A DNA stretch of 64,000 nucleotides from Octopus sinensis (lineage: Eukaryota), in the NCBI RefSeq assembly GCF_006345805.1, contig NC_042997.1, positions 80,352,001 to 80,416,000 on the forward strand, read 5' to 3'. A model generated the notes under the pieces. It did no database searches and had not been told where the DNA came from. It saw nothing but the letters and a program-made list of their open reading frames with translations. Positions within the stretch are counted from its first letter, which is position 1. Each line of letters opens with the position of its first letter. Position numbers and translations under genes: made by a program. Below, piece by piece: positions 7,723 to 64,000 of the stretch.

Positions 7723-10700
7723 TCACATACATCTATCCATATGTACATACACACACACACACATATGCATACACATACACATATGCATATCTTTTGAACA
7801 AATATATAAAAATTTACATGCATATATGCATGTTCCAAGTTGTAGGCATGTTCCAAGTTTTGCACCCACAGTGAAATTTTGGATAGGAGTACAAGTTTTC
7901 AAGAAGATCAAAAACTATTTGACATCTGAATTTCTTTCTTTTTATCTTCTGACAGTATCTTGCATAATCCAAAGTATGGAAACAGATATTCAAAAAATTT
8001 TGCTGATTTGAGAGAGAAATAATAAACACAAAGTACTGATATCAAGTAGTAGATTTGTGTGAAGAAATAAAAAAAAATATGCAGGTTCTACTAGTAAATA
8101 TTAAAAAAAAATAGTGCAAGTATGTTTTCCTTTATATAATTTTTGTGTAGTTCTTGTGCATTTTTGTGACACTTGGCTTGAACCATCATCTGAATTGTTA
8201 GGACGTAACAAATGTGAGTGAATCAACATTTGCAAGCTTACTGAATTCTTTTTGAAGCAATTCATCCAAAACAGTGAATTCATGCATACATTTTAGATAT
8301 CATACCTTGAAATGGATGGGTACCACTGCTAGCATGCACATGTTTGTGTATGCATGCACACACAAATATTCATACATATCAACATCATTACTTTAATGCC
8401 TACTTTTTCATGGGTCAAATGAAAGTACATTGGGGCAGAATTATCTATAGCCAGATGTCCTTCCTGATGCCAATCCCAAAGTGAGACAGTAACCTCTCAG
8501 TTTATCAATCAACAACCCAGACATGGTTCATGGAGAACTGGATACAAATAGTATCATTTGATTGGGTCTTTTATTTACAATGATTGCATAATATATCAAA
8601 ACATGTTAAGAAGCCTGGATATACTTTTATATTGTACTGCAAGCAAATGATACTATCTGTATGAATAGTGACACTATTGTTTATAACTAGTGAACAAGCA
8701 TAATGCTGAGAGCCAACACGAACTCTCACATACATACCCTTCCCCTACATACACACACTCTGAATGAGCTACTCCAAAAGCTTTGGTCACTTGAGAGCTT
8801 TAGTAAAAGATTTGTCCAAGGTGCTGTACAGAGAGACACTTGTCCAAGGAGACATACATGCATATGTATCCACATATATATGTGTCTGTGTGTGTACCTT
8901 ACATAAACATATATATGCACAGCACATAAACACACTCACACACGCATGCATATAGACACACAATCTAGTCTCATCCCAACCTTGCATTGCAGAGTAACAC
9001 ACAGACATTCCAAACACTATTGATCTCTTTCTCATCTCATAACCTAACTTCTACACAACTGTAAATGTCTCTATACCTATTTGTTATCTCACCACTGCTT
9101 CATCATAATTAATATACTTTTAATATACATGTACCTCCATACTACATAGTTCATTGTTAATCAAAACAATATATATTTTAGGCACAACGCATTCCTTCAA
9201 TGCTTTGATGTACTATCAAAAGCACAAAACACTCAAATTAAGCTATTCACTAAGGTGCTAACTTAATTTACAATTGTATTATATAGCAACTAAGTATTCT
9301 ATGCCATTGATTAGGAAAGAAAACAATGTACGTCACTTTGAGGAGTGGTTGACAAACTGAAATCTTTCTCTTTTTCCCATGCATTAAAAGCACAGAAAGG
9401 ATGCATTCACATTCACACACTGCTAGGCTTTGTAATATTTAAATTTCAGTTCTTCCAATTGATACTGTGTTGTGCATAAAATATATATTAATAATTGCCC
9501 ATCAAAAATCTTAATATGCAAATTAAACTTTTTAACAGTTGTTAGACTAATTCATTAGTTTTATAGAACAGTTAAATATTCTGTGCCATGGATTAAGAAA
9601 GGGAACCAGGAATGTTTTCTCAAGTAGTCATTGACAAATCATGAAACAGTCTGCCAAGAAACTCCTTGCTTTTTTCTTCTACACATCAAAGCACAGACGG
9701 AATGTACTTCCTTAGTTCTACAATAAGTAAAATTTGTAATACTTAAATACACACACAGAGTCCTTGAGCAATAATTATTTGAAGGGTTCACAAGACACAA
9801 CTAAGCTAAAGGAGAATACAGAAGAAAGAGGAAGTACAATAGTAAGGAACGAAACAGAGAAGAGGAAAAGAAGGAGTATAGTAAATGAACACAAATAGCA
9901 AGGTAAAGTAAAATTATTAGGCAGAGGAAGATGCTGTGATAATAACTGAAGTGAACTGCCCTCTTAGTGAAAAACTGTAAAAACATGGCCTGCATGCAAT
10001 ACATACTTTGCAACACTGAAAGAAAAAAAACAAAGAAAAAAAAGAAGACTTTAAGAGGGTAAGACCACAAATCTATGATCAACATAATTTGCAAGCTAGC
10101 AAGTTCCAATGACAATAACTTAGATTAAGGAAACAATTTTACTCTCTCTTATTTTTACATACATACTCATTCACACACATTTATATATATATATAAAAAA
10201 AAGGTTATAATCAACCATACACATATACACATATGTATATTGAATTGGCTAAAAGTTCTAAATACTTCAAGATATAAGTAATGAATAAGGTATGCTATTG
10301 GTAATTTTACCAGAAAATATTAATCACAGATTAACACACAACACACACTTAGATGTGTTTTCTAATACTTTTACAATTCATAGGCAAGTAGTTTAATTGC
10401 ATAGCATAAACACTTTACTCTGTTTAATAAGTGAAAATACAGTACAAGTAAAATCTCTTTTCAAATATGATCTATAATTTATGACAATCTATTTTACAAA
10501 ATTCAAATTAAACCTTTAAATACACAACACCCACACACATGTGCATTTATATAATTGCTATATTTGCGCACATGCACATGTAATTTTTAGTAGATACATT
10601 TTACAAAAAAATGATTGTTTAGATTTATTTTACCATACATGGTGGATATGATATCTAAGAATTATTAAGAAAGGAAATAAGGCCTATTTTATCTTATTTG

Positions 10701-11789
10701 TGAGGCACAAACTAATATTAGTACTGAGTTGTCTTCCAGTGATAACCATTCAATGTTGTCTAAGAAAACACTACAGCACCTCTCCTCACAGTACATAAAC
10801 TCACTTTCTTTTATGAATTTCAGACTATTAATTACTTCACATTGTGTATTTTTTGAAAAGCTTAAGTTGACTTGTGTAAGAAATTCATCATTTAAAACAG
10901 TATAACATTGAACTAGGTACTGTAAAGATTTTAGGCTGTACTAACACTGTATGATTGGAAGGTAGACCTAATTCATTTAACACTGCCCTTGGTAGCAAGT
11001 CTTTAGCAGAGTCCACTCTATTATAAACATTTATGCTAGATCTCTGAAGTGTTTCTCCCAACTGTTGCAATGCAGAAGCTTTAATTCTTCTCATCTTTCT
11101 CACATGTTATCTAGTAAAGTTTTCTCCTGTGACTACTTCTGCAGCAGCAGGTCTTCTTTTGTCTAAATGCTAAATACAATTTACCTGAACATATTTTATC
11201 CAATGCTGCTTTCTGTAACTTTAATTCTAGCAAACAATACACACTCAGCATACTAAATGCTGTTCTAATATAGGAATGAATTTACTTTTATCAGGTTGTG
11301 AATGATAGGTTTGACCATTGTAGTTGAGAACACAGAAAAATAGAGAAATGCACGAGTCCTACGATTCATGACATCATTTACAATCCAATATGCTTTTACA
11401 TGTGTTGTCTACAAGGACAATTTTCTTCCATGACTATTTCTACAGCATAAGGTCTTCCCATGTCTGAGTGCATTCAAGCACACACACGCATATTTATGTA
11501 TCATACTTCTTTGCCACACACACACACTTGACCAATATGTTGATAATGAGATGTAATAAATGGAAATAGAGCAGAAGCCTGCCATATATAAACATTCATG
11601 TGGGAGATACAATATACTTAATAGCCAAAAGTATAATAGTTAATACCATATACATTGGAAGATGTACAAAAAATATTTGTAGAAAGTCATGGCAAACAGT
11701 AATATACAGATATTAATGTCATCTTTTTTTTTGTGATTCATTATAATTAAAAAGTTTTTTTTTATTCACTCGTTGGGTCTTGAAGAAAG

Positions 11790-20382: not shown

Positions 20383-22292
20383 GAACAGAGATGAAAATTA
20401 ACAGGTCATTTTATTCCCACCAGTCAGTTTTGTGAATTCAGCAAAAATGTAAGAAAAAACTTCCATCATTGATATAAAGGCTTTTGCAGCTGAGAAGATT
20501 CACAGAATAATTTTTGTTTCTTTTTGAGTATATTTTCCAAAAGTTTATACAGAAATCTTTTTGAAGAAATTGTTGAAAAAAATTTGCTTGAACTGAAATT
20601 GATTCAAAGGCATAACTACAGATTTCTGTCCCCATCCCCACTTTGGATGATCATAACTTTCAGAAAAATGGATATTTTTTAATGAAATTGTCTTCGAATA
20701 TGTGTTACATCATGTAGATTCCAAATATGCAAAATTTTTTTAGGAGGGTAAAGTGTTTTAGGAGGTGTTGGGGTGGGGAATTTCGGAAACTTCACCGGAG
20801 TCCACTTCAATTCGTCTTAATTTTCAAGAAAATGGATATTTTTTAATGAAATTCTCTACAAATATACCTTGGACTATGTAGATTTCGATAACAGGAATTT
20901 TTGGGGAAAACAATTGGGGGCTAGTTTTGAGAAATGTTCCCCACTCGCAGGTGTTTCTCAACAAGTTGTCCATATTTGTTTCATTTTCTCTGTCTTGTGC
21001 GTTTGTGCATCTGTAGATTTCTACTGAAGCAACAAACAGGCAATGAAGCCCTCACCAGAAAACTAGTTATGTTAAAAATAACAGCTAACGGTCTGGTACA
21101 CAGAGACATGTTATTAAGACGACTTATCTGTTGCATATGATTTTTTTTTGCTTTAAGTAAATTCCCAGATAAATGTTTCTAATAGAAAGGCAGAAGACAT
21201 CAGAAGCAAAAATAAGGAATATGCATGCACAATTAAATATAGATGTGTAAAGCATAATTTGTTACATAATCTCTATCGTAAACATGATATTGAATGGAAT
21301 AATCCTCCGTTTGAACTTTTTTCAATTACATGTGTGTGAGTGGTGTGTGTGTATGTAGGAAATCTACAGATGCACAAGTGCACAAAATGGAAAAAATGGA
21401 ACAAATATGGATGACTTATTCAGAAACACTCGCGAGTGGGGAACAATTCTCAAAAATAGCCCCCAAATGTTTTCCCCCCAAATTCCTGTGTCCCGGGAAT
21501 CTACATAGTCCGAGGTATATTTGTAGAGAATTTCATTAAACAATATCCATTTTCTTGAAAGTTTAGATAAATTGAAGTGGACTCCAGTGAATTTACCAAA
21601 ATCTCCCCCCACAACACCTCCTAAAACACCCCCCCCACCAAATTTTGTATACTCGGAATCTACATGATATAACACATATTCGTAGAAAATTTCATTAAAA
21701 AATCCATTTTTCTGAAAGTTATGATCATCCGAAGTCGGGGGTACAGAAATCTGTAGTTATGCTGATTCAAAAATATATAAAAGCAGTGCAAGTAAAAAAA
21801 AACTTTCTTTAATATTCAGGGGAATATTCAAAATTTGGATTTATACCCGCTGTCCATGATAAACTGTCATCAAGTTATGGGTGAAAAACTCAGATCTTGT
21901 GAATTTTCAGAAGTTCTATCCCCACCCCTTGGAAAAGATTTTCATACAAATTTCTTTATAATCATAATCTATGCCGGTTGAAAGGTATTTATATAAAATT
22001 TCATTAAAAAAAAAAAAAACATTTTCCTAAAAGTTATGAGGAAAAAACTCAGACCTTGTGAATTTTCTGAAGTCCTCCCCACCCCTGTTGATTTCCACAC
22101 ATATTTTTCATATTCATTTCCTACAAATTTTTCTTTTGTCCATTGCACTATTTTTTATGTATTTTGTTTCCAGGTAATATTGTAAACATTAACCAAATTT
22201 TGAATAACAAAAATTAAATATCACAAGGGGGCATCAAGATATTTTAGAAATGATCCGATGGGGCATGGCCAAAAGTCGGTTGGGAACCACTG
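19742..22292 (-). mobile_element. hAT/Charlie-type DNA transposon, non-autonomous and decayed
   Basis: TIRs CCGTGATTCTCAAC / GTTGGGAACCACTG with an exact 8-bp TSD CTCTAGTG (19734-19741 and 22293-22300). Minus-strand remnants of the hAT C-terminal dimerisation region (FW..., ENDL) near 19850-19930 and 20390-20600. Confidence 0.85.
20610..21762. repeat. Long inverted repeat (~400-bp arms 20610-21021 and 21359-21762) nested in the hAT element
   Basis: Arms align as reverse complements over their length (e.g. GCATAACTACAGATTTCTGT / ACAGAAATCTGTAGTTATGC; GTGCATCTGTAGATTTC / GAAATCTACAGATGCAC). They are built from internal modules (AATTTCATTAAAAAATCCATTTT) that recur to about 22080. Confidence 0.85.
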
Positions 22293-33109: not shown

Positions 33110-36100
33110 GGCTACTGTATTACTTGCTCATGAATTCTGCCAAATGCGAGCTTTCTTTTCAGGTACATGAAGCTACTGTCCACCGTCGCAGGGCCTCTAG
33201 GGCCCATACCTCCCACACCCTCAGGGTTGGCACCCTCAACGTTGGCATACTGAAAGGTAGGTCTGGCGAGATAGTCGAGATGCTTGAACGGAGATGTGTG
33301 GATATATGCTGCATGCAAGAAGTAAGGTGGAGAGGAAGTTCTGCTAGGTTCCTCACAGGCAAGGAACACAGGTACAAGATTTTCTGGGCAGGGAACACTG
33401 ACGGGGTTGGTGGCGTGGGTATACTTATCACTGAGAAATGGGTAGATAAAGTAATTGAGGTAATCAGAGTATGTGACAGAATACTTAAGATTAGATTAGT
33501 GCTTCATCATGGATTAGCAACCATTATGTCAGCCTATGCTCCTCAGCCGGGGTTACCCGATGGACAGAAAGACCGATTCTATGACACTCTGCTGCAGACT
33601 ACTTCGTTGATGAATGACAGAGACCTTCGCTTTGTGGCTGGTGACTTCAATGGTCATGTTGGACGACATGCTGGGGGCTTCCATGGCGTACATGGAGGCT
33701 ATGGCTATGGTTTCCACAACGAGGAGGTTGCTGGAGTTCTGCGATGCAAATAATCTTATGATTTGCAACACTAACTTCAGGAAACCTACCAGCCACCTAG
33801 TCACCTACCGATTGGGCCAACATACCAGCCAAATTGACTACATCCTTGCCAGGCAAAGGGAGAGATGGCTACTTATAAATGCCAAAACCTTCCCAGGCGA
33901 AGAATGTACCCCACAACATAGACTGGTAGTTAGTGACTTTAGGATCAGGACTAGGAGGACAACCAGAAGACGACCAACATGGAGAAGAAGGATCTGGAAG
34001 CTTAAAGATCCTGTGAATGGACAGAGATTTAGGGACATGCTACTTGAAGCCTTTGATGAAGTAGAAGGGGATAGAGTATCACATGGGGTAGAGGGCAACT
34101 GGACGTTTCTAAGGGACAACCTGCTGAGAGCCACTGACCAGATCTGTGGCTGGTGCAAAGTCCCCTCTCGTCCCAAGGTAACGTGGTGGTGGAACAGTGT
34201 TGTAGACAGGTCTATTAGAGAAAAGAGACAGACTTGGAAGCACTGGAAGAATGGTGGTAGCAGGGAATTGTATCAGACTGCTAAAAGGGAAGCTAGGAGA
34301 CAGGTCTATCTAGCCAGAGGGGAAGCAGATAAGAAAAAATTTGCCAATGTTCTGTGGCGTGAGGACCAAAGACTGGAGGTGTTTCGCGTTGCAAGACAGT
34401 GTGTGAGAGAGAATTGTGATGTGGTAGGAGAGAAGTGTGTTCGCATGGAAGATTGTTCACTTGCGCTAAATGAGGATGCAAAGAGAGAGGTTTGGAGACG
34501 CCACTATGAAAGGTTGCTGAATAAAGAGAATGAATGGGATAAAGAGAGTCTGCCGAATGTTGACCCAACAGAGGGACCAGCTATCCGAGTTGATAGTTCC
34601 TTGGTAGTTAAGGCAATTAGAAGCATGAAGACAGGGAAAGCCCCAGGCCCATCAGGTATCACTGCAGAGATGCTCAAAATATCTGGTAGTGTCGGCTATA
34701 GCCTAATCACCCGTATAGTTAATCAGGTGATACACGAAGGAGTCATACGAAGGTGTAGCAGCATAATAGTCAACTGCTACAAAGGTAAAGGTGACGCCCT
34801 AGATACAAATAATTACAGAGGTATCAAGCTGTTGGATCAGGTAATGAAGGTTACAGAGAGGGTCATAGCCCAACTAATTAGAGAGAAAGTTAGTTTAGAT
34901 GAGATGCAGTTTGGGTTCATGCCAGGGAAAAGTACCACTGATGCTATATTCCTGGTAAGGCAGCTGCAGGAGAAATACCTAGCCAAAGATAAGCCCCTGT
35001 ACCTGACTTTTGTTGACATGGAGAAAGCCTTCGACAGGGTCCCCCGATCCCTCATCTGGTGGTCAATGAGGAAACTAGGGATAGATGAATGGTTAGTGAG
35101 AGCTGTGTGAGCCATGTACAGGGACGCTGCTAGTAAGGTGAGGGTTGGCAACGAGTACAGTGAAGAATTCCGGGTAGAGGTAGGGGTCCACCAAGGCTCA
35201 GTCCTCAGCCCCCTCCTATTTATCATATTCCTCCAGGCAATAACGGAGGAATTCAAGACAGGTTGCCCCTGGGAGCTCCTCTATGCTGATGACCTTGCTC
35301 TAATTGCTGAGTCACTATCAGAACTGGAGGAGAAGTTTCAGGTGTGGAAGCAAGGTTTAGAATCGAGGGGCCTTAGAGTCAATCTAGCTAAAACCAAAGT
35401 CGTAATAAGTAGGAAGGTAGACAAATCACAAACGCCTTCAGGTAGATGGCCCTGCTCGATCTGTAGAAAAGGTATAGGTAGAAACTCTATAAGATGCACC
35501 AAGTGTAAGCTATGGACACATAAGAGGTGCAGCAATGTCAAAGGAAGGCTAACTAGGAAGATGGTTTTTGTATGTGGCAGATGCTTGGGAGCATTAACTT
35601 CTGAATATCTGCAGAAGACAACTTCCGTCACTTTCCAGGGGGAAAAACTAGAAGCAGTTGATAGCTTCCGTTATCTTGGTTACCAAGTCAGTAGTGGGGG
35701 TGGGTGTGCTGAAAGTGTAACGGCTAGAGTAAGAATAGCCTGGGCAAAGTTTAGGGAGCTCTTACCTCTGCTGGTGACTAAAGGCCTCTCGCTCAGAGTA
35801 AAAGGCAGACTGTATGATGCATGTGTACGAACAGCCATGCTACATGGCAGTGAAACATGGGCCGTGACTGCTGAGGACATGCGTAAGCTCGCGAGAAATG
35901 AAGCCAGTATGCTCCGATGGATGTGTAATGTCAGTGTGCATGCTCGACAGAGCGTTAGTACCCTGAGAGAAATGTTGGACCTAAGGAACATCAGTTGTGG
36001 TGTGCAAGAGAGACGATTGCACTGGTATGGTCATGTGGCGAGAATGGATGAAGATAGGTGTGTGAAAAAGTGCCAATCCCTAGCAGTGGAGGTAACCCAT

Positions 36101-36838
36101 GGAAGAGGTAGACCTAGGAAAACTTGGGACGAGGTGGTGAAGCATGACCTTCGAACTTTAGGTCTCACTGAGGAAATGACCAGCGACCGAGACCTTTGGA
36201 AATATGCTGTGCGTGAAAAGACCAGGCAGGACAAGTGAGTCCAGCCCACTTATGCATGCCTTTCCTCCCTTGGACACACAAAGACCTGTTGAGGCAAGCA
36301 AAGTCGATATCGAACCTCATCCGACGACAGGCACCTATGCCAACCCCACTTTGCTTGCGAAGACCTGTTGGGGCAAGTGAAATCGAAATCAAAATCGGAA
36401 TCGAAATTGAACCAATCCTATGACTGGCACCTGGCAGATGCCAGGACCCCTGGACTGGAGATACATAAAAAGCACTATCCGAATCGTGGCCGATGCCAGC
36501 GCCGCCTCTACTGGCTTCCGTGTCAGTGGAACGTAAAAGGCACCACCCGAATCGTGGCCGAGCCAGTGCCGCCTCGACTGGCTTCCATGCAGATGGCATG
36601 TAAAATGCACCAATCCGACCGTGGCCGATGCCAGCCTCGCCTGGCACCAGTGCAGGTGGCACGTAAAAAGCACCCACTACACTCACGGAGTGGTTGGCAT
36701 TAGGAAGGGCATCCAGCTGTAGAAACATTGCCAGATAAGACCGCAGCCTGGTGCAGCCTTCTGGCTTTCCAGATCCCCGGTCGAACCGTCCAACCCATGC
36801 TAGTATGGAGAACGGACGTTAAACGATGATGATGATGA

Positions 36839-37520: not shown

Positions 37521-37532
37521 CATACACACATA

Positions 37533-39059
37533 CAGTTGCGGCCAAAATGTTCAGAACCGCATTGTTTTCGTCAGAAAAGTAGATATAAGTTTTTATCAAA
37601 GTAGTTTTATATTTTATAATTTTCACAGACAATAAATACAATATTAATTGTTATTGTCTGAGATTTTGGTGTAATTTGAGAGGATAATACAAAGGTTATG
37701 GATGATTTAGTGATTTACTGCAAAACCCATGCCGGCCAAAATGATCAGAACAGTTGAAAAAATAACAAAATAATCAAAAATTACAGAGAATACTAGAATT
37801 ATTTAATATTTAGTGTGAAGCCCTTTAGCTTCAATCACACTCTGACATCTTCGACTGCATGAGGAAATTAAATTTTCAATTTCTTGCTGGGTGATCTTAT
37901 TCCATTCTTCCTGAGGGCATTCCATAATTGCTCGGTTGTTTTAGGATTTCTGACTTTCGAACGTTCTCCTAGAATATTCCACACATTTTCAACAGGATTA
38001 AGATCTGGGCTTTGATCAGGCCAATCCATAACAATAACCTTTTCAGCCTTAAGGAAGTTCATGACCACCTTAGCCTTGTGACATGGGGCATTGTCCTGCA
38101 TGAATATGGGTGGTCGCTTAGTTGAATTTCTCAGCACAGGCAAGACATGTTGTTTATAAACTTCTGCATTTACCTTTTCATGTAATCGCACCAAAGGGCC
38201 CACACCATCTCCAGATATCATCCCCCAAACCATGACACTTCCACCGAATTTAACACTAGTCTTAAGGCATTTAGGCAACAATTTTTCACCTACTTTTCTA
38301 CGAATGTACCTTTTCCCATCTGAGCCAAATAGCACTTTTTATTCTTGGAGCTGATCAGTGGCTTCACAGCAGGTGCTCTTGCTTGTAGGTCATGTTCAAC
38401 TAAACGACGAGACACAGTTTTCGAGATAAAGTTTTCTTCAATACAATGCTCATTTTCCGAGAAACAGTAGCAGCAGTTTTAAATCTGTCCTTTTTAACCA
38501 ACTTTACCATAGCACGATCTTCTCTCTTGGTCATTTTTCTTGGCCTACCTGTAAACTTTCTTGCTTCACACGAACCACAATCATCGTAGACCTTAAGAAT
38601 ACCGTGTACAACACTTTTTGACTTGTTAACAATCTTTGCAATAGATCCAATACTTAAATTATCCTTCCTTCCAAACTTAATAATCTACTGATGAATTGGT
38701 AACGGAGTAAGTGGCATTATATTAATAAAGTACACTGCAAATATTCTTACTAATATTTAGTAAACGAACCATCACGTAAACACATTCAAAACATTAGAGT
38801 TCGCCGGTTGAATATACTAAAACACGGAGTAAAAGCAACCGTTCTGATCATTTTGGCCGCCATGGGTTTTGCAGTAAATCACTAAATCATCCATAACTTT
38901 TGTATTATCCTCTCAAATTACACCAAAATCTCAGGCAATAACAAATAATATCGTATTTATTGCCTGTGAAAATTATAGAATATAAAACAACTTTGATAAA
39001 AAATCCTATCTACTTTTCTGACGAAAACAATGCCGTTCTGAACATTTTGGCCGCAACTG
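37533..39059 (-). mobile_element. Tc1-family transposon with ~225-bp IR/DR terminal inverted repeats; defective transposase
   Basis: TA|CAGTTGCGGCCAAAATGTTCAGAAC ... GTTCTGAACATTTTGGCCGCAACTG|TA. GGCCAAAATG(T/A)TCAGAAC is repeated at both ends of each TIR. Transposase from ATG 38717 with GRPRK, SVKFGGSVMVWG, MQDNAPCH and SPDLNPVEN motifs, plus a stop and an internal deletion. Confidence 0.96.
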
Positions 39060-39074
39060 TATATATAAATATAT

Positions 39075-44839: not shown

Positions 44840-46500
44840 GAAAGAAAAGTACACGAAAATAATGTGTATAGGAAAGCAATAGAAGCTGTAGGTAAAATAT
44901 CAGACTAACAGTTTGATCACTGATGACAGAGAATGCGAATTCCGGTGTTGAATTCCATCGTAATACCCAATAAACTTCTTCTCCTAAGTAACACCACATA
45001 CTCTCCTAATAAATAAGTTGTACAGTAGTGGTAGCATCAAAAAGCAGCAGCAGTGACAGCAGCAATAAACACATGTACTCACGTTATTTGTAAAGCATCG
45101 TGGAGAAAGCTCTGCGCCTCAAAACTTTTAAGCTTTGTCAACCTTTCTGAAGATCGCTGGGGTGGTGGACAGGTTTGTCTATATTAAATACTGCGGACAG
45201 AGAATATAAACGTTTCTCATCGGCTACTAAATCTAAGTTTAAGAGAAACGCCTTATCTACTGTACAGGGTGTCGCAAGTTAGCACACGCCCTTGATATAA
45301 GTGGGCATTAAATGACGTGTTGACAGAATTTCGTGTATATAGATTTTTTTTTCTCTTTTGTTATATTTTAAACTTTTTTTCTTTTCTAAGCGTGTTAGTT
45401 GGCTGAGATATAAAATCTACGTGTCGTTCAACTGTTATAGGTAAGACGGTGAGACTGCTGTCGTCACATAAGTCAGACAAAGAGAGATAACTTATTTTCG
45501 TTCCACACTTGAAATAATAATACTCCTAACAACGATTTTTAACATTATAAAAAAACAAAAGTAATCAGGTCTCTAGGAAAGTAAAAATGGAAATATTGGT
45601 GTGTGCGTGATGGCTGGTGCAGATCAGGTTTACACTTACTCTGATCGAGTAGGCTAACAATCAACGACATTCCAACCGTGACCATCCCGAATTTTCCTTA
45701 CATTCTGAGGTTTTCACTCGTCTATGTTAATGCAGCAGAAGGGACACGTAAGATGCGTTTACGTCAGGAGTCGGTAGGTAGGTTTTTGTGCACAGGAGTA
45801 TTGAAAAATGAACCATGTGCTTGTTATTACGCCGCTGTCAAGAAATTATTTTAGAATGTCTAAACAACTTCACAACGTACTTAAGTCTTCAGGAAAAAAC
45901 TACACTTGACTTCACTTGAAGAACTGGGTTGGTATAGTTATAATAAAAAAAATCAAAACTTCTTTTCTCTTTTGTACTTCTCTCTACTTTAGAAACAATA
46001 GAAGTTCCGGCATAGTTTCGGTTGTAGTAGCACAGATTTCCGTCGATTTCCGTAAAAAACTTCTATTTTTTTACATAAGTAATGAGAGCGAAAGAGACTA
46101 AGAGGAAGCGATTTTACGACGAGAAGGTTTCACTTTGAAGTCGGCCTGTGTGTGTTTGATGGGGTGTGGGAGACAGACAGTATGTTGTGTAAGTGAAGTG
46201 CTTCTGTTAGTGTGTGCGAAGAGAAAGAGAGAGATAACTGATTTTTTACTCGGTGTATGTGTATATGTATGTCTGCATGTATGTGTGTGTGTGTATGTAT
46301 CTATGTATGTGTGTGTTTCAAAGAGAAACCTTCTCGTCATAAAATCGCTTCCTCTTAGTCTCTTTCGCTCTCATTACTTATGTAAAAAAATAAAAGTTTT
46401 TTACGGAAATCGACGGAAATCTGAGCTACGACATGCGAAACTTCGCCGAAGTTCCATTTACATTCAGCCATGCAATAGAATTTTTCTGAAAAGTAAACTA
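44400..46500. promoter_or_regulatory. CpG-retaining region; candidate (bidirectional) promoter and first-exon zone
   Basis: Visibly more CG dinucleotides in non-TE sequence than elsewhere in the window (not counted). Divergent donor sites: minus-strand AAC|GTGAGT at 45083/45082 and plus-strand TAG|GTAAGA at 45440/45441. Confidence 0.45.
46001..46455. repeat. Inverted repeat with ~139-bp arms around a ~180-bp TG-rich spacer
   Basis: CAGATTTCCGTCGATTTCCGTAAAAAAC...GAGAAGGTTTC at 46033-46131 is mirrored at 46325-46423. Confidence 0.92.
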
Positions 46501-51708: not shown

Positions 51709-51720
51709 CGTATATATATG

Positions 51721-53325
51721 ATGTACCCAGTGTAAGCTATGGACACATAAGAGGTGCAGCAATGTCAAAGGTAGGCTAACTGGGAAGATAGTTTTTGTAT
51801 GTGGCAGATGCTCGGGAGCATTAACCTCCGAAAATCTGCAGAAAACAACTTCCGTCACTTTCCAGGGGGAAAAACTAGAAGTAGTTGATAGCTTCCGTTA
51901 TCTTGGTAACCAAGTCAGTAGTGGGGGTGGGTGCGCTGAAAGAATAGCCTGGGCAAAGTTTAGGGAGCTCTTACCTCTGCTGGTGACTAAAGGCCTCTCG
52001 CTCAGAGTAAAAGGCAGACTGTATGATGCATGTGTACAAACAGCCATGCTACATGGCAGTGAAACATGGGCTGTGACTGCTGAGGACATGCGTAAGCTCG
52101 TGAGGAATGAAGCCAGTATGCTCCGATGGATGTGTAATGTCAGTGTACATACTCGACAGAGCGTTAGTACCTTGAGAGAAATGTACCTAAGAAGCATCAG
52201 TTGTGGTGTGCAAGAGAGACGATTGCGCTGGTATGGTCATGTGGCAAGAATGGATGAAGATAGGTGTGTGAAAAAGTGCCAATCCCAAGCAGTTGAGGGA
52301 ACCCGTGGAAGAGGTAGGCCCAGGAAAACCTGGGACGAGGTGGTGAAGCATGACCTTCGAACTTTAGGCCTCACTGAGGAAATGACCAGCAACCAAGACC
52401 TTTGGAAATATGCTGTACGTGAGAAGACCAGGCAGGACAAGTGAGCTCAGCCCACTTATGAATGCCTTTCCTTCCTTGGACACAAAGACCTGTTGAGGCA
52501 AGCGAAGTTGATATAGAACCTCATCCGACGACAGGCACCCATGCCAACCCCCTTTGCTTGCGAAGACATGTTGGGGCAAGCGAAATCGAAATCGAATTGA
52601 ACCAGCCAGGATCCCTGGTCTGGTGGTACGTAAAAAGCACTATCCGACTCATGGCCGATGCCAGCGCCGCCTCCACTGGCTTCCGTGCCGGTGGCAGGTA
52701 AAATACACCAATCCGACCGTACGACAGGCACCCATGCCAACCCCCTTTGCTTGCGAAGACATGTTGGGGCAAGCAAAATCGAAATCGAATTGAACCAGCC
52801 AGGATCCCTGGTCTGGTGGTACGTAAAAAGCACTATCCGACTCGTGGCCGATGCCAGCGCCGCCTCCACTGGGTCCGTGCTGGTGGCACGTAAAATACAC
52901 CAATCCGACCGTACGACAGGCACCCATGCCAAACCCCTTTGCTTGTGAAGACATGTTGGGGCAAGCAAAATCGAAATCGAATTGAACCAGCCAGGATCCC
53001 TGGTCTGGTGGTACGTAAAAAGCACTATCCGACTCGTGGCCGATGCCAGCGCCGCCTTGACTGGCTTCCGTGCCGGTGGCACATAACATACACCAATCCG
53101 ACCATGGCCGTTGCCAGCCTCGCCTCGCACCTGTGCAGGTGGCATGTAAAAAGCACCCACAACACTCACGGAGTGGTTGGCGTTAGGAAGGGCATCCAGC
53201 TGTAGAAACATTGCCAGATAAAACTGGAGCCTGGTGCAGCCTTCTGGCTTCCCAGATCACCGGTCGAACCGTCCAACCCATGCTAGCATGGAGAACGGAC
53301 GTTAAACAATGATGATGATGATGAT
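51721..53325 (+). mobile_element. RTE LINE 3' portion with an expanded 3' UTR
   Basis: C-terminal ORF (KGRLYDACV..RRLRWYGHVARM..GRGRPRKTW), a triplicated ~192-bp UTR unit and a (GAT)n tail. Confidence 0.95.
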
Positions 53326-53602
53326 ATATATATATACATGTATATATACGCATATATATATACATATATATATACATATATATACGTATATATATATACA
53401 TATATATACGTATATATATATACATATATATACATATATATACATATATATATATATACATATACATATATATATATATACATATATATATACATACATA
53501 TATATATACATATATATACGTATATATATACATATGTATCTGTGTATATATATATATACATATATATATATATACATACATATATATCTGAATATATATA
53601 CG

Positions 53603-53639
<37 letters not shown>

Positions 53640-53786
53640 GGTTAAGTAATTGAGATTCTAGTGAATTCTAAAGAATTCACATGAATATGGTCCTTAACTA
53701 GGATGCACCGGATATCTATATGGTGTTAACCATACGACAAGTGGGATGATTATAAATAGGAAAAAAGCAACAAGAATGGATTAAAA

Positions 53787-53874
53787 TCTCGGTACGATCG
53801 TTTCGTACGAGGACATCTTTAATAAGCTACAAAAAATGCAGTGAATACAGATGGCTCGTACTCGTCAGCCGAAA
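53787..53874 (-). ncRNA. Type I hammerhead ribozyme motif, mirror copy
   Basis: Identical to the + copy except for a fully Watson-Crick stem II GTACGAG/CTCGTAC; predicted cut between 53793 and 53792. Confidence 0.87.
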
Positions 53875-53953
53875 AAATATCAGAGAATTCCCAAACATCA
53901 AAAGGGGTAAGGGGTAGATACCCCTTTTGATGTTTGGGAATTCTCTGATATTT

Positions 53954-54041
53954 TTTCGGCTGACGAGTATGAGCCATCTGTATTCACTGCATTTTTTGTA
54001 GCTTATTAAAGATGTCCTCGTACGAAACGATCGTACCGAGA
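53954..54041 (+). ncRNA. Type I hammerhead ribozyme motif (minimal, PLE-type), canonical core
   Basis: Stem I TTTCGG/CCGAGA; core CTGACGA (53960-53966); stem II GTATGAG/CTCGTAC; GAAA (54024-54027); stem III AC-GATC-GT (palindromic ACGATCGT); GUA cleavage triplet, predicted cut after 54035. Confidence 0.85.
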
Positions 54042-54072
54042 TTTTAATCCATTCTTGTTGCTTTTTTCCTAT

Positions 54073-54453
54073 ATATATATATATATATATATAATACATA
54101 TATATATATATATCTATACATATATATCTGTATATATATACATATATATCTGTATATATATACATATATATCTGTATATATATACATATATATCTGTATA
54201 TATATACATATATATCTGTATATATATATATATATACATACATATATCTGCATATATATATACATATATCTGTATAATATATATATTATACATATATCTG
54301 TATATATATATATACATATATCTGTATATAGATATATATACATATATCTGTATATATATATACATATATCTGTAATATATATATATATATACATATATCT
54401 GTATATATATATATACATACATATATCTGTATATATATATATATATACATATA

Positions 54454-54521
<68 letters not shown>

Positions 54522-55110
54522 TCTGTATATATTATATATATACATATATCTGTATATATATATATATATACATATATCTGTATATATATATATATATATA
54601 TCTATGTATATATATATATATATACATATATCTGTATATATCTATATATATATATCTGTATATATATATATACATATATCTGTATATATATATATACATA
54701 TATCTGTATATATATATATACATATATCTGTATATATATATATATACTATATATCTGTATATATATATATATACATAATCTGTATATATATAATATATAC
54801 ATATATCTGTATATATATATACACATATATAATATATGTATATATATATATATACATATATCTGTATATATATATATATATATACATATATCTGTATATA
54901 TATATATATATATATACATATATATACATATGTATATATATATATAATATATAATATATATACAATATATATACATATGTATATATATATATAGATATAT
55001 ATATATATACATATATATATATATCTGTATATATATATACATATATATATATACATATATACATATATATATATCTATATATATAATATATATATATATT
55101 ATATATATAT
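54073..55110. repeat. Complex (TA)n array with ATATATACATATATCTGT-type units
   Basis: Low complexity; all YI-rich ORFs here are artefacts. Confidence 0.97.
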
Positions 55111-55692
55111 AAAAATCCTTAAAAATGTATCAGCCTGAAGGCTGCAGCCATGCTGGGGCACCACCGCTGAACGAGCTACACTAATATGTGATTCCACCTC
55201 TGATACATGGCACTTGGTCAACAAGGGAGTTTGAAGCCGCTGCCCGCATCTCTGTCTCCTGTCACGAGGTAGGTTAATCTGGGACCCCCGACAAGAAGAG
55301 ATCCAGTTTAGTTTTAAAGATACCCACATCCACACCATGCAAGTCTCTCAGGCATTTAGGGAGGATTTTAAAGAGCTGTGGTCCTCTGAAACCCGAGCTG
55401 TTGCAGTATCTGAACCTGTATTTTGATGGTGATGTGGGAATATTTGGCACCAGGCAGTGCCGCCCCGTTCTGCAGTTTGGGTAACTTTGAATGCCAAAGT
55501 TTGGTACAAGACCCTCCAAGATTTTCCAGATGTATATCACCGCATATCTCGCCCGTCTTCACCGTAGGGAGAAGAGTTTTAATACTTTTAGTCTTTCCCA
55601 GTAGCTGATATGTTGCATTGAGACGATCTTCTTAGTGTAGCTTCTTTGAATTGCTTCGAGTTCTGCTGTTAGCTTTATATTGTTTAGTGACC

Positions 55693-57988: not shown

Positions 57989-58012
57989 ATAAATATTATA
58001 TATATATATTAT

Positions 58013-58044
<32 letters not shown>

Positions 58045-58101
58045 ATATATATATATATATGTGTATAAATATGTATATATATATACATATTTATACATAT
58101 G

Positions 58102-58142
<41 letters not shown>

Positions 58143-58331
58143 TATATATATATACATATTATACATATGTATGTATATATATATATATATATTATATATA
58201 TATATATATATATGTATGTATAATATGTATATATATATTGTATATATATATGTATGTATATATGTATATATATATATGTATATATATAATATATATGTAT
58301 ATATAATATGTATATATATAATATATATATG

Positions 58332-58374
<43 letters not shown>

Positions 58375-58803
58375 TGTATATATATATACATATATATATA
58401 TATTATGTATATATATATAATATATATATATATATGTATATAATATATATATATGTATATATATATATATAAATATGTATATATATATATATATATGTAT
58501 ATATAATATATATATATATGTATGTATAATATGTATATACATATTTATACATATGTATGTATAAATATGTATATACATATTTATACATATGTATGTATAA
58601 ACATGTATATATACATATATATATGTATGTATGTATAAATATGTATATATATATATATGTATAAACATGTATATATACATATATATATGTATGTATGTAT
58701 AAATATGTATATATATATATATGTATAAACATGTATATATACATATATATATGTATATATGTGTATAAATATGTTATATATATACATATTATACATATGT
58801 ATG

Positions 58804-58836
<33 letters not shown>

Positions 58837-58885
58837 AATATGTATATATATATACATATTTATACATATGTATGTATATATATAT

Positions 58886-58929
<44 letters not shown>

Positions 58930-59071
58930 ATATATGTATATATATATATATAATATATATGTATGTATAAATATGTATATATATATATGTATATAATATA
59001 TATGTATGTATAAATATGTATAATATATATGTATATATATATATAATATATATTAATATATATATAAATAG

Positions 59072-59103
<32 letters not shown>

Positions 59104-59458
59104 TATATATATATATATAATATATATATATATGTATGTATAAATATGTATATATATAATGTATATATATATGTATGTATAAATATGTATATATTATACA
59201 TATTTATACTATGTATGTATATATATATATATAATATATATATATAGGTATGTATAAATATGTATATATATATGTATATATATATGTATGTATAAATATG
59301 TATATATAGATATATATATATGTATTATATATATCTATATATGTATATAAATATGTATATTATATATTATATATATGTATGTATAAATATGTATATACAT
59401 ATTTATACATATGTATGTATAAATATGTATATACATATTTATACATATGTATGTATAA

Positions 59459-59496
<38 letters not shown>

Positions 59497-59533
59497 ATAA
59501 ATATGTATATATATATACATATTTATACATATG

Positions 59534-59574
<41 letters not shown>

Positions 59575-59763
59575 TATATATATATACATATTATACATAT
59601 GTATGTATATATATATATATATATTATATATATATATATATATATGTATGTATAATATGTATATATATATTGTATATATATATGTATGTATATATGTATA
59701 TATATATATGTATATATATAATATATATGTATATATAATATGTATATATATAATATATATATG

Positions 59764-59806
<43 letters not shown>

Positions 59807-60037
59807 TGTATATATATATACATATATATATATATTATGTATATATATATAATATATATATATATATGTATATAATATATATATATGTATATATATATAT
59901 ATAAATATGTATATATATATATATATATGTATATATAATATATATATATATGTATGTATAATATGTATATACATATTTATACATATGTATGTATAAATAT
60001 GTATATACATATTTATACATATGTATGTATAAATATG

Positions 60038-60229: not shown

Positions 60230-60238
60230 AAATATGTA

Positions 60239-60270
<32 letters not shown>
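57683..60270. repeat. 2.6-kb complex (TA)n array with higher-order structure
   Basis: Low complexity with GTATGTATAAATAT variants and an internal duplication at a 1432-bp offset. Confidence 0.97.
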
Positions 60271-62293
60271 GTGGACAGAGATTTAGAGACATGTTACTTG
60301 AAGCCTTTGACGAAGTAGAAGGGGATAGAGTATCACATGGGGTAGAGGACAACTGGACATTTCTAAGGGACAACCTGCTGAGAGCCACTGACCAGATCTG
60401 TGGCTGGTGCAAAGTCCCCTCTCGTCCCAAGGTAACGTGGTGGTGGAACAGTGTCGTAGACAGGGCTATTAGAGAAAAGAGACAGACTTGGAATCACTGG
60501 AAGAATGGTGGTAGCAGGGAATTGTATCAGACTGCTAAAAGGGAAGCTAGGAGACAGGTCTATCTAGCCAGAGGGGAAGCAGATAAGAAAAAATTTGCCA
60601 ATGTTCTGCGCCGTGAGGACCAAAGACTGGAGGTGTTTCGCGTTGCAAGACAGTGTGTGAGAGAGAATTGTGATGTGGTGGGAGAGAAGTGTGTTCGCAT
60701 GGAAGATGGTTCACTTGCGCTAAACGAGGATGCAAAGAGAGAGGCTTGGAGTCGCCACTATGAAAGGTTGCTGAATAAAGAAAATGAATGGGATAAAGAG
60801 AGTCTGCCGAACGTTGACCCAACAGAGGGACCAGCTATCAGGGTTGATAGTTCCTTAGTAGCTAAGGCAATTAGAAGCATGAAGACAGGGAAAGCCCCAG
60901 GACCATCAGGTATCACTGCAGAAATGCTCAAAATATCTGGTAGTGTCGGCTATAGCCTAGTCACCTGTATAGTTAATCAGGTGATACATGAAGGAGTCAT
61001 ACCCAATGACTGGTGTAGCAGCATAATAGTCAACTGCTACAAAGGTAAAGGTGATGCCCTAGATACAAATAATTACAGAGGTATCAAGCTGTTGGATCAG
61101 GTGATGAAGGTTACAGAGAGGGTCATAAGCCAACTAATTAGAGAGAGAGTTAGTTAGATGAGATGCAGTTTGGTTTCATGCCAGGGAAAAGTACCACTGA
61201 TGCTATATTCCTGGTAAGGCAGCTGCAGGAGAAATACCTAGCCAAAGATAAGCCCCTGTACCTGGCTTTTGTTGACATGGAGAAAGCCTTCGACAGGGTA
61301 CCCCGATCCCTCATATGGTGGTCAATGAGGAAACTAGGAATAGATGAATGGTTAGTGAGAGCTGTGCAAGCCATGTACAGGGACGCTGCTAGTAAGGTGA
61401 GGGTTGGAAATGAGTACAGTGAAGAATTCCGGGTAGAGGTAGGGGTCCACCAAGGCTCAGTCCTCAGCCCCCTCCTATTTATCATAGTCCTCCAGGCAAT
61501 AACGGAGGAATTCAAGACAGGATGCCCCTGGGAGCTCCTCTATGCTGATGACCTTGCTCTAATTGCTGAGTTATTATCAGAACTGGAGAAGAAGTTTCAG
61601 GTGTGGAAGCATGGTTTAGAATCGAAGGGCCTTAGAGTCAACCTAGCTAAAACCAAAGTCGTAATAAGTAGGAAGGTAGACAAATCACAAACGCCTTCAG
61701 GTAGATGGCCCTGCTCGATCTGTGGAAAAGGTGTAGGTAGAAACTCTATAAGATGTACCAAGTGTAAGCTATGGACACATAAGAGGTGCAGCAATGTCAT
61801 AGGAAGGCTAACTAGGAAGATGGTTTTTGTATGTGGCAGATGCTCGGGAACATTAACCTCTGAAAATCTGCAGAAAACAACTTCCGTCACTTTCCAGGGG
61901 GAAAAACTAGAAGTAGTTGATAGCTTCCGTTATCTTGGTGACCAAGTCAGTAGTGGGGGTGGGTGTGCTGAAAGTGTAACGGCTAGAGTAAGAATAGCCT
62001 GGGCAAAGTTTAGGGAGCTCTTACCTCTGCTGGTGACTAAAGGCCTCTCGCTCAGAGTAAAAGGCAGACTGTATGATGCATGTGTACGAACAGCCATGCT
62101 ACATGGCAGTGAAACATGGGCCGTGACTGCTGAGGACATGCGTAAGCTCGCGAGAAATGAAGCTAGTATGCTCCGTTGGATGTGCAATGTCAGTGTTCAT
62201 AGTCGACAGAGTGTAAGTACCTTGAGAGAAAAGTTGGACCTAAGAGGAATCAGATGTTGTGTGCAAGAGAGACGATTGCGCTGGTATGGTCAT
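60271..62293 (+). mobile_element. RTE LINE internal (RT) fragment bounded by TA arrays
   Basis: Near-identical to 34018-36030, with complete RT motifs (DMEKAFDRV, QGSVLSP, LYADDL). It starts and ends abruptly in (TA)n. Confidence 0.96.
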
Positions 62294-62370
62294 ATGTATA
62301 TATATATATATATATGTATATATATACATATGTATATATATATATGTAAATATATATATGTATATATATA

Positions 62371-64000
62371 TCATCATCATTGTTCGACCGTGGTCGAGAC
62401 AATGGAATTTACCATGTTGCGCCAGACTTCACGGTCCATCATAGCATTACGGAGGTCCTGTTGCTGGATGCCTGTATCCCTGGAGATTACATCAGGGTAG
62501 GAGAGTGTGTGCCCTCTGGTGTTGCGAGTAGATGGCTTCCAGAGGAGAAGAGTAGAAATTACTTCTTTTTCAGCTCTACAACAATGTCCAGCAAACTGGA
62601 CTCTCCTACCTTTCACAAGAGATGACACAGGTGGTAATTTCCCATATATTTGCATTTTAGTTGGATGGCTCCTCCACGAGAGATTTTGAGCTCTCATAAG
62701 GAGGCGAGTGTAGGTTCCATCCAACCACCTCTCAAGCTTCTTTGATAACGTCCAGGTTTCTGAGCCATATAGTAGAATTGGTTTGACTGTGGCTTTGAAT
62801 ATTTCAAGTTTGAAGTCTCTACTTAGATTTGATGACCAGATCTTATGCATGTCATTACAGGCTGACCAGGCTATACCCTTTCTAGTTAGAAAGTCTTTTC
62901 CAGATGATGATATGTATGACCCAAGATATTTATAATCAGAAACCATATTTAAAGGTGCACTGTTGAGAGTGTGGATGATGCAATCACTGTTGGACAGGCA
63001 CTTGTTCATGTATTCAGTTTTGGTCTCATTAAGGTAAAGACCTACACAATTTGAGGCTTGTTCAAGAGATTGTAAAAGAGACTGGGCATTGGAGAGAGAA
63101 TCACTGATAAGAGCGATGTCGTCAGCAAAGTCAGTGTCTGTCAAGTACTCAGCTGGGTGTCTGGAACTTCTTCTTGGTTTTATTTCAAAGCCCTTGCCAG
63201 AGATGGTATCAACTGACATACGTAGCACATAATCAACAACAATGATGAAAAGAAATGGGGCGAGTGTCTCCCTGCAGTATTCCGGCCTCGATCGAGAAAG
63301 ATGATGTTTCTCCATCAGGGGTTAAGATGGTTGAAGACGTATCTGTGTAGAGGACCTTGATGGCAGAAATAATTTTGTCTGGTATCCCATAGAGCTTAAG
63401 GATTTCAAACATCTTGCACCTATCTACAGAATCGAACGCTTTAGAAAAGTCTACAAATACCATTGCAAGATCGCGATTAAATGCTTTTGATTCTTCAATA
63501 AGTCTGCGCAGGCATAGTATCTGGCTCAGCGTTGAGCGCCCATGTCTGAATCCATTTTGGTTCTTTCGGAGCAAAGGTTCAACAAAAAGGACAAGACGAT
63601 TTAGGATCAGTTTGTTGTACAGTTTTGCAGCAATTGACATTAGAGATATGCCCCTGTAGTTGGTGACGAGGGACAAATCGCCTTTTTTGGGTATTGGAAT
63701 GATTTGAGACTGGTGCCAAATCTTTGGAGCGACAAAGGTGGAAAGTGTGTGGTTGCAGAGGTTAAGCAAAAGTGTGTGAAATCTATCATCCTTCCAAATC
63801 ACAGCCGGAATGTTGTCGGGACCAAATGCTTTCGAGGCTTTTAGTTGCTTGGTGGCTGCTGTTAGTTCAAATATGGTAAAAGGGGAGGTGTTGATGTCCA
63901 GCGTGTCTGATATAGGTACACTTGGGAGAGTGGGGTTATCAGGGATTTTGGCATTCTTCCCAAGGAGGTTTTTAAAATGGGTTGACCAATTTTCTAAACG
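62371..64000 (-). mobile_element. RTE/RTEX-like LINE RT and 3' end, continuing beyond the window
   Basis: NYRGISLMS, QNGFRHGRST, DFSKAFDSV, GILQGD, DFADDIAL, YKYLGS; frameshift near 63290; (TGA)n tail at 62371-62380. Confidence 0.95.

Follow-up and report, generated by a model that had tools for sequence, protein, structure and literature searches.

A near-perfect palindrome of twin type I hammerhead motifs beside (TA)n in Octopus sinensis, probably an inverted remnant of a Penelope-like element

In a 64-kb stretch of Octopus sinensis DNA (the window, contig NC_042997.1), two complete type I hammerhead ribozyme motifs lie on opposite strands, one in each arm of a near-perfect palindrome of 317 bp that adjoins a long (TA)n microsatellite. 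The locus is probably a dead-on-arrival pair of head-to-head 3' ends, each truncated at its 5' side, which was left in (TA)n by a hammerhead-bearing Penelope-like element (PLE) or by a non-autonomous element that depends on PLEs. The attribution to PLEs is drawn from ribozyme class, architecture, target and host and not from direct linkage. Most likely, the twin hammerhead falls within a type of structure that is already known, and is not a novel ribozyme switch.

Geometry of the palindrome and its surroundings

A symmetry scan placed the center of the palindrome at 53914 and returned exactly what an earlier note on this DNA had described, namely arms of 154 bp, a 9-nt spacer and one G/T mismatch (Table 1). 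The arms are fully complementary except at a single pair, G at 53858 versus T at 53970, where a CpG to TpG transition in the right arm has turned a C-G pair of helix II into U-G. A single difference in 154 nt points to either a recent event or homogenization of the arms, and the unit, called young in the same note, is thus young or homogenized. The TA-rich flank may account for the outermost 3 bp of the palindrome (ATA/TAT), in which case the element proper may span 53759-54069 (GGAAAAAAGC...GCTTTTTTCC).

Table 1. Features of the palindrome and its flanks. Positions are those of the window; coordinates on the - strand derive from those on the + strand by p <-> 107828-p.
Feature	Position	Strand	Description or basis
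Left arm	53756-53909	-	5'-truncated element copy; 5' end central, 3' end outward
Spacer	53910-53918		AGGGGTAGA; read directly from sequence
Right arm	53919-54072	+	5'-truncated element copy, + strand reading
Sole inter-arm difference	53970	+	T, versus C in the other copy (+ strand G at 53858)
TA-rich microsatellite, left	53324-53638		ATATATAC-type; TRF
Unique sequence	53640-53755		116 bp, between left microsatellite and palindrome
(TA)n-rich microsatellite, right	54070-55111		presumed insertion target; TRF period 2, 527 copies
Type I hammerhead motif	53954-54041	+	Rfam RF00163 full-length, descriptor match, MFE helices I and II
Helix I	53954-53959 / 54036-54041	+	UUUCGG / CCGAGA, 6 bp, one G.U
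Core	53960-53966	+	CUGACGA; read from sequence
Helix II	53967-53973 / 54017-54023	+	GUAUGAG / CUCGUAC, 7 bp, closed by G10.1-C11.1
Loop 2	53974-54016	+	43 nt; further 5-bp helix CAUCU/AGAUG inside
GAAA	54024-54027	+	read from sequence
Self-complementary block (helix III)	54027-54034	+	ACGAUCGU, palindromic
A17	54035	+	predicted cut after A17
Type I hammerhead motif, mirror image	53787-53874	-	Rfam RF00163 full-length, descriptor match, MFE helices
Core, - strand copy	53868-53862	-	mirror of + copy
Helix II, - strand copy	53861-53855 / 53811-53805	-	all Watson-Crick, GUACGAG
A17, - strand copy	53793	-	predicted cut after A17

The first seven nucleotides of the spacer are a second copy of the final seven of the left arm (AGGGGTA, 53903-53909) and also the reverse complement of the TACCCCT with which the right arm opens (53919-53925). 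The center can be written AGGGGTA-AGGGGTA-GA-TACCCCT and drawn in two registers, combining a mini-palindrome with microhomology at the junction. As read from these letters, the repeated heptamer and the inverted repeat would support an origin by template switching.

This is the only near-perfect palindrome with a short spacer within the window, whose remaining inverted repeats show 79-94% identity and are separated by spacers of 178-2726 bp. That it is a fold-back artefact of assembly or sequencing is highly improbable: chimeric long reads can yield near-perfect palindromes, and the inverted structures of PLEs are known to trouble assemblies (PMC8557442), but here the palindrome is short and internal, its flanks differ from each other and are non-palindromic, the arms are distinguished by the CpG to TpG change, the junction is structured by its 7-nt duplication, and no other such palindrome occurs in the window.

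The right end of the palindrome abuts about 1 kb of (TA)n. On the left, a LINE fragment ends in a SINE-like module, and the TA-rich array comes directly after the (ATG)n tail of this module. The 116-bp stretch between this array and the left arm, 53640-53755, matches nothing else in the window and nothing in the O. vulgaris loci; it could be target DNA that was there beforehand, or it could have arrived with the insertion, for example as a 'tail' or a transduced sequence. Small hairpins are present in it, GTTAAG...CTTAAC around a ATTCTAGTGAATTCT/AGAATTCACATGAAT inverted repeat and TATGGT-GTTA-ACCATA. Because the flanks are TA-rich, a target-site duplication is unreadable. TA-rich simple repeats constitute a sizeable share of the region, comprising the two flanking arrays and an extremely AT-rich block at 58001-60000 (GC 8%) with a TA/TATATAC-type microsatellite.

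The window is transposon-rich animal sequence, including several LINEs with APE and RVT_1 domains and remnants of Tc1/mariner elements (DDE_3). Its LINE reverse transcriptase shares 82-83% identity with Octopus bimaculoides and O. vulgaris proteins, and its repeats match a piece of an O. vulgaris chromosome at 80-97% identity. Two ORFs of the window have no record as called genes. One LINE family, which carries APE, RVT_1 and a PHD-like finger, is represented by three copies or fragments (33124-36238, 60234-62500 and 51715-52445) with about 90% identity to a copy at 9012-11272 of a 20.9-kb O. vulgaris locus. The 3' regions of this family contain a 192-bp tandem repeat (52528-53103, three copies, 96%) and terminate in the SINE-like module with its (ATG)n tail, which extends to about 53325.

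The hammerhead motifs and their predicted folds

Read on its own strand, each arm holds three helices around the core, with helix I open, as in type I, and helix II closed by G10.1-C11.1. The signature CUGACGA ... GAAA ... U-A is found on each strand, and all conserved positions are present on both, including C3 U4 G5 A6 N7 G8 A9, G12 A13 A14, A15.1-U16.1 and an H17 that is not G. A9 runs directly into G10.1, which pairs with C11.1 both as read from the sequence and in the Rfam alignment, and the triplet at the cut site is GUA in both arms. A distance of 28-31 nt separates the end of the ribozyme from the outer end of the arm. The arm-to-arm change from C-G to U-G, a single event, is compatible with helix II pairing.

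A relaxed type I descriptor was composed after the motif had been seen, with thresholds well under the values of the motif itself: it asks for 4 bp or more in each of helices I and II, with G10.1-C11.1 in the latter, and for a palindromic helix III and an H17 other than G. Scanned over both strands of the window, it matches at exactly two sites, which are the two arms, and it has no match on either strand of 300 dinucleotide-preserving shuffles of the 64 kb. The hammerhead motif is beyond chance expectation.

When each arm was searched alone, the Rfam model Hammerhead_1 (RF00163) aligned over its full length (1-45 of 45), with 19.7 bits (E=0.01) for the + arm and 21.4 bits (E=0.003) for the - arm, both below the gathering score of 34 bits. 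Every core letter of the model consensus (CUGAcGAGU...ACGAAACG..CGU) is matched, and the alignment carries an insertion of 47-53 nt in helix II, where the model expects 4-10 nt. The earlier note had claimed a complete type I hammerhead in each arm with every core base present, which the descriptor and this alignment confirm, and the cuts that it predicted, after 54035 and after 53793, agree in position with the A17 assigned from the sequence on each strand. The covariance-model check that it proposed succeeded as to full-length alignment of both arms and fell short as to score.

The hammerhead surfaces in the Rfam search only when a single arm is the query. At gathering thresholds the whole window gave no Rfam match, and a 441-nt piece searched at E<=10 gave no hammerhead and only matches to plant miRNA families of the generic kind that long hairpins attract. 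Among the latter, the models MIR8562, MIR5048, MIR847, MIR1120 and MIR821 matched 53778-54050 on both strands with E down to 1e-23, all far under their gathering scores. Labels of this kind (MIR8562, MIR1120 and others) were rejected, with 118.6 versus 211 bits and 60.9 versus 86 bits needed for gathering; any long perfect hairpin can draw plant MITE-derived miRNA labels in permissive searches.

In unconstrained minimum-free-energy folds of the isolated ribozyme regions (-25.4 kcal/mol for + and -27.2 kcal/mol for -), helices I and II form with pair probabilities of 0.80-0.99. In the predicted monomer, ACGA of the core is paired to UCGU from the helix III block, and such a fold is inactive. 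The cofold of two copies, in turn, is a classical double hammerhead with an intermolecular helix III of 8 bp and an energy of -56.8 kcal/mol, versus -50.8 kcal/mol for two monomers, such that the dimer lies 6 kcal/mol lower. Taken together, the core, the helices and the dimer cofold argue for a genuine hammerhead by sequence and predicted fold, whose helix III would form only as a dimer. The entire palindrome is predicted to fold into a single hairpin with a 154-bp duplex at about -277 kcal/mol, as expected from the suggestion in the earlier note that a read-through RNA would form a long dsRNA hairpin.

An 80-aa stop-free frame that spans the palindrome, compared with 1.84 billion protein representatives, gave spurious matches only, these being two leucine-rich-repeat proteins hit through a short NI.EFP motif. 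An ATG-initiated ORF of 52 aa (53819-53977, -) lies wholly within the palindrome, running from the antisense of one ribozyme through the center into the other ribozyme and ending at a TAA in loop 2. This ORF is probably spurious; it would nevertheless be of use as a query for sister copies of the palindromic form in collections of ORFs.

Origin from a Penelope-like element and the alternatives

In every PLE that Cervera & de la Pena examined (2014, PMC4209133), the terminal repeats carry type I hammerheads. These are characterized by a helix II of 7-8 bp (enlarged, 6-8 bp), a poorly defined loop 1, a conserved G10.1-C11.1 pair, and a very short helix III that is palindromic at 15.2-16.2/loop 3 and permits dimers (PMC4209133). 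This short palindromic helix III class is tied to PLEs and thought to act as dimers (PMC4209133, PMC6765202), as the earlier note had stated. The motifs described here resemble it in being of type I with a full core, G10.1-C11.1, a 7-bp helix II and an open helix I without loop 1, and in a helix III made of the self-complementary ACGAUCGU, which is stable only between two copies. They differ in the 43-nt loop 2, with its second helix of 5 bp, and in having no linked PLE ORF. Relative to RF00163, the likeness is the full alignment and the difference is the sub-gathering score with the long helix II insertion.

The arrangement also has precedents. Thousands of solo hammerhead motifs per genome have been ascribed to truncated PLEs, as have dual minimal hammerheads on opposite strands about 100-700 bp apart (PMC4209133); compared with these dual motifs, the present pair forms an exact palindrome and is not merely placed on opposite strands. 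PLE insertions are heavily truncated at the 5' side, where an inverted copy, itself 5'-truncated, is often adjacent; hammerheads lie close to the 3' end, a tail of 30-40 bp is often present, and some PLE clades show an insertion bias towards (TA)n (Craig et al. 2021, PMC8557442). The octopus locus shares the head-to-head orientation with 3' ends outward, the position of the ribozyme near the 3' end, the 5' truncation and the adjoining (TA)n, and the earlier note's view that PLE termini are often inverted fits this published architecture. In contrast to the PLE insertions described, both copies end at the same nucleotide with no longer copy attached, and a 30-40 bp tail is not identifiable. Nothing observed relates the 116-bp stretch on the left to the element. 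As for the host, PLEs are abundant in Octopus, and 30 Penelope families with recent insertions have been reported in O. vulgaris (PMC13282606).

The following course of events would account for the structure. The 3' part of an element RNA, with the ribozyme about 35 nt from its end, would have been reverse-transcribed at a broken (TA)n target, and synthesis would have halted after about 154-163 nt at the short internal inverted repeat AGGGGTA-GA-TACCCCT. At this repeat the growing cDNA would have folded back on itself, or else two cDNAs primed in opposite orientation would have annealed to each other; both routes would leave arms of equal length with the same outer end, joined by 9 nt that include a 7-nt duplication. 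The outward 3' ends and central 5' ends may be explained by target-primed reverse transcription from both sides or by snap-back of the first cDNA, and the stop of both arms at the same nucleotide, as the letters of the junction suggest, by a short inverted repeat that lets a cDNA fold back or two cDNAs anneal. Unlike R2 or L1, a PLE protein in purified form cuts both strands of DNA and extends them, and ribozyme cleavage is dispensable for insertion in vitro (Frangieh et al., PMC11167929). The ribozyme motifs would then be passengers from the parent element, in which they would have been carried on tandem RNA copies and acted as dimers through the palindromic helix III.

Several observations speak against a PLE. 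No PLE coding sequence (reverse transcriptase with GIY-YIG) was found in the window: among ORFs of at least 120 aa, all reverse transcriptase domains belong to APE+RVT_1 LINEs, and there is no GIY-YIG or other PLE signature, so the association with a PLE reverse transcriptase that the earlier note proposed to look for did not appear within these 64 kb. However, the absence of a PLE ORF is expected for a solo truncated copy and leaves a PLE origin standing. Further points are the sub-gathering Rfam score and the long 43-nt loop 2, the exactly equal arms, more symmetric than the published inverted truncated copy beside a longer one, and the 116 bp on the left (53640-53755), which the PLE origin does not account for.

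In addition, there is no second copy of the arm in the window, in the O. vulgaris DNA or in the collections searched. The O. vulgaris sequence, about 24 kb, consists of the 20.9-kb locus, which was reached through a LINE protein, and 3 kb added by walking, and it contains neither the arm nor any hammerhead, and has no match to the descriptor. Two metagenome scans for copies of the arm or the motif gave no matches. A scan of viral contigs with a generic core pattern gave two matches, one of which was inspected and dismissed as chance, as its position 17 is a G and its helix II is weak.

An alternative, which is unlikely though to be reckoned with, is that the locus derives not from a PLE fragment but from a non-autonomous hammerhead element, SINE-like or of the retrozyme type, that was mobilized in trans and became inverted as it inserted. 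Hammerheads of type I whose helix III is short and palindromic define animal non-LTR retrozymes (de la Pena lab 2020, PMC7229834) and are also carried by SINE-like elements of schistosomes (PMC6765202), and no PLE ORF is nearby. On the other hand, retrozymes are direct tandem repeats that give rise to circular RNAs, whereas the octopus pair is inverted, such that no tandem dimeric transcript is possible, and no direct tandem copy of the hammerhead unit was found in the window, which holds a single inverted pair. Given that animal retrozymes are reported to derive from PLE pLTRs (2026 preprint, bioRxiv 10.64898/2026.07.22.740005), their evolutionary source is probably the same, and this alternative largely merges with an origin from a PLE or a PLE-dependent element.

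Little credence can be given to the reading that the locus is a palindromic MITE, or a DNA transposon of the foldback type, flanked by a duplicated TA target, and that its likeness to a hammerhead is accidental. Palindromic MITEs and hairpin-RNA loci are likewise near-perfect inverted repeats of about 300 bp that give a long dsRNA hairpin if transcribed, the ends of the palindrome can be read as TA|GGAAAAAAGC...GCTTTTTTCC|TA, the window does hold Tc1/mariner elements and MITE-like inverted repeats, and the only Rfam matches over the whole hairpin are the MITE-derived miRNA models. These matches, however, are far under gathering, and a TA duplication is meaningless inside TA-rich flanks. The termini show no similarity above shuffles to the three elements with terminal inverted repeats in the window, the resident mariner ends in TA|CAGT, unlike the palindrome, and a MITE has no need for helices I and II within each arm plus 13 fixed core letters, a complete ribozyme whose motif is absent from all 300 shuffles.

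Three other inverted-repeat elements of the window may be described here. A Tc1/mariner element at 37530-39062 has 227-bp terminal inverted repeats that are 94% identical, with canonical TA|CAGTTGCGG ends on both sides, and encloses a remnant of a DDE_3 transposase (37868-38335, -). The elements at 45997-46458 (143-bp arms, 91.6% identity, 178-bp spacer) and 20610-21762 (414-bp arms, 85% identity, 338-bp spacer) are probably DNA transposons of the MITE or foldback type, unrelated to the hammerhead palindrome.

Function of the inverted pair and what the locus records

In a transcript of either strand, the 5' arm would hold the antisense copy, and the only sense ribozyme would lie in the 3' arm. 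For its helix III this class requires a second sense copy. An architecture that supplies one per transcript therefore works against ribozyme function, and the inversion amounts to a loss of the tandem partner that functional PLE arrays supply. The single sense ribozyme, paired with its own antisense in the modeled 154-bp duplex, would be expected to show no catalytic activity. Rather than as a regulatory device, the palindrome is more simply explained as having been left behind by the insertion, although, like any long inverted repeat, the locus may be a source of dsRNA for Dicer or ADAR.

The earlier note had proposed a self-masking ribozyme switch, a proposal that finds no support in a locus with one sense ribozyme per transcript. 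That the palindrome functions as a self-masking ribozyme, or as a gene for a hairpin RNA, with its hairpin edited, diced or opened to release the hammerhead, is scarcely probable. The predicted duplex of a read-through RNA and the intactness of both copies, whose single substitution keeps helix II paired, would suit such a gene, but the intactness is accounted for by youth, helix III requires a second sense copy, and activity in this class is low in vitro, being seen in dimeric or trimeric constructs only (PMC4209133). Moreover, the locus lies within a microsatellite and has dead transposons around it. Other proposals also carry a very small probability, namely that the palindrome is transcribed in this coleoid cephalopod as a long perfect hairpin RNA, diced or heavily A-to-I edited so as to free a hammerhead that cleaves in trans-dimers, or that the palindromic form is itself what moves in a new non-autonomous element, hairpin-shaped and carrying hammerheads; if the transcribed hairpin were real, ribozyme activity would be gated by dsRNA processing, through unwinding or central cutting. 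The self-masking switch is an unnecessary hypothesis, and a new class of ribozyme regulation is not opened by the present evidence.

For annotation, the locus illustrates that a real hammerhead with a long insertion in helix II escapes the Rfam gathering threshold and standard filters, and that such loci may receive MITE or miRNA-like hairpin labels instead. As a young and clean example it unites two features already known from PLEs, namely hammerheads with a dimer-only helix III and twin insertions into (TA)n that are inverted and truncated at the 5' side. The locus is most valuable for its junction, where the equal arms, the 7-nt duplication and the mini-palindrome record how inverted PLE structures may form, through the snap-back of one cDNA or the annealing of two at a short inverted repeat.
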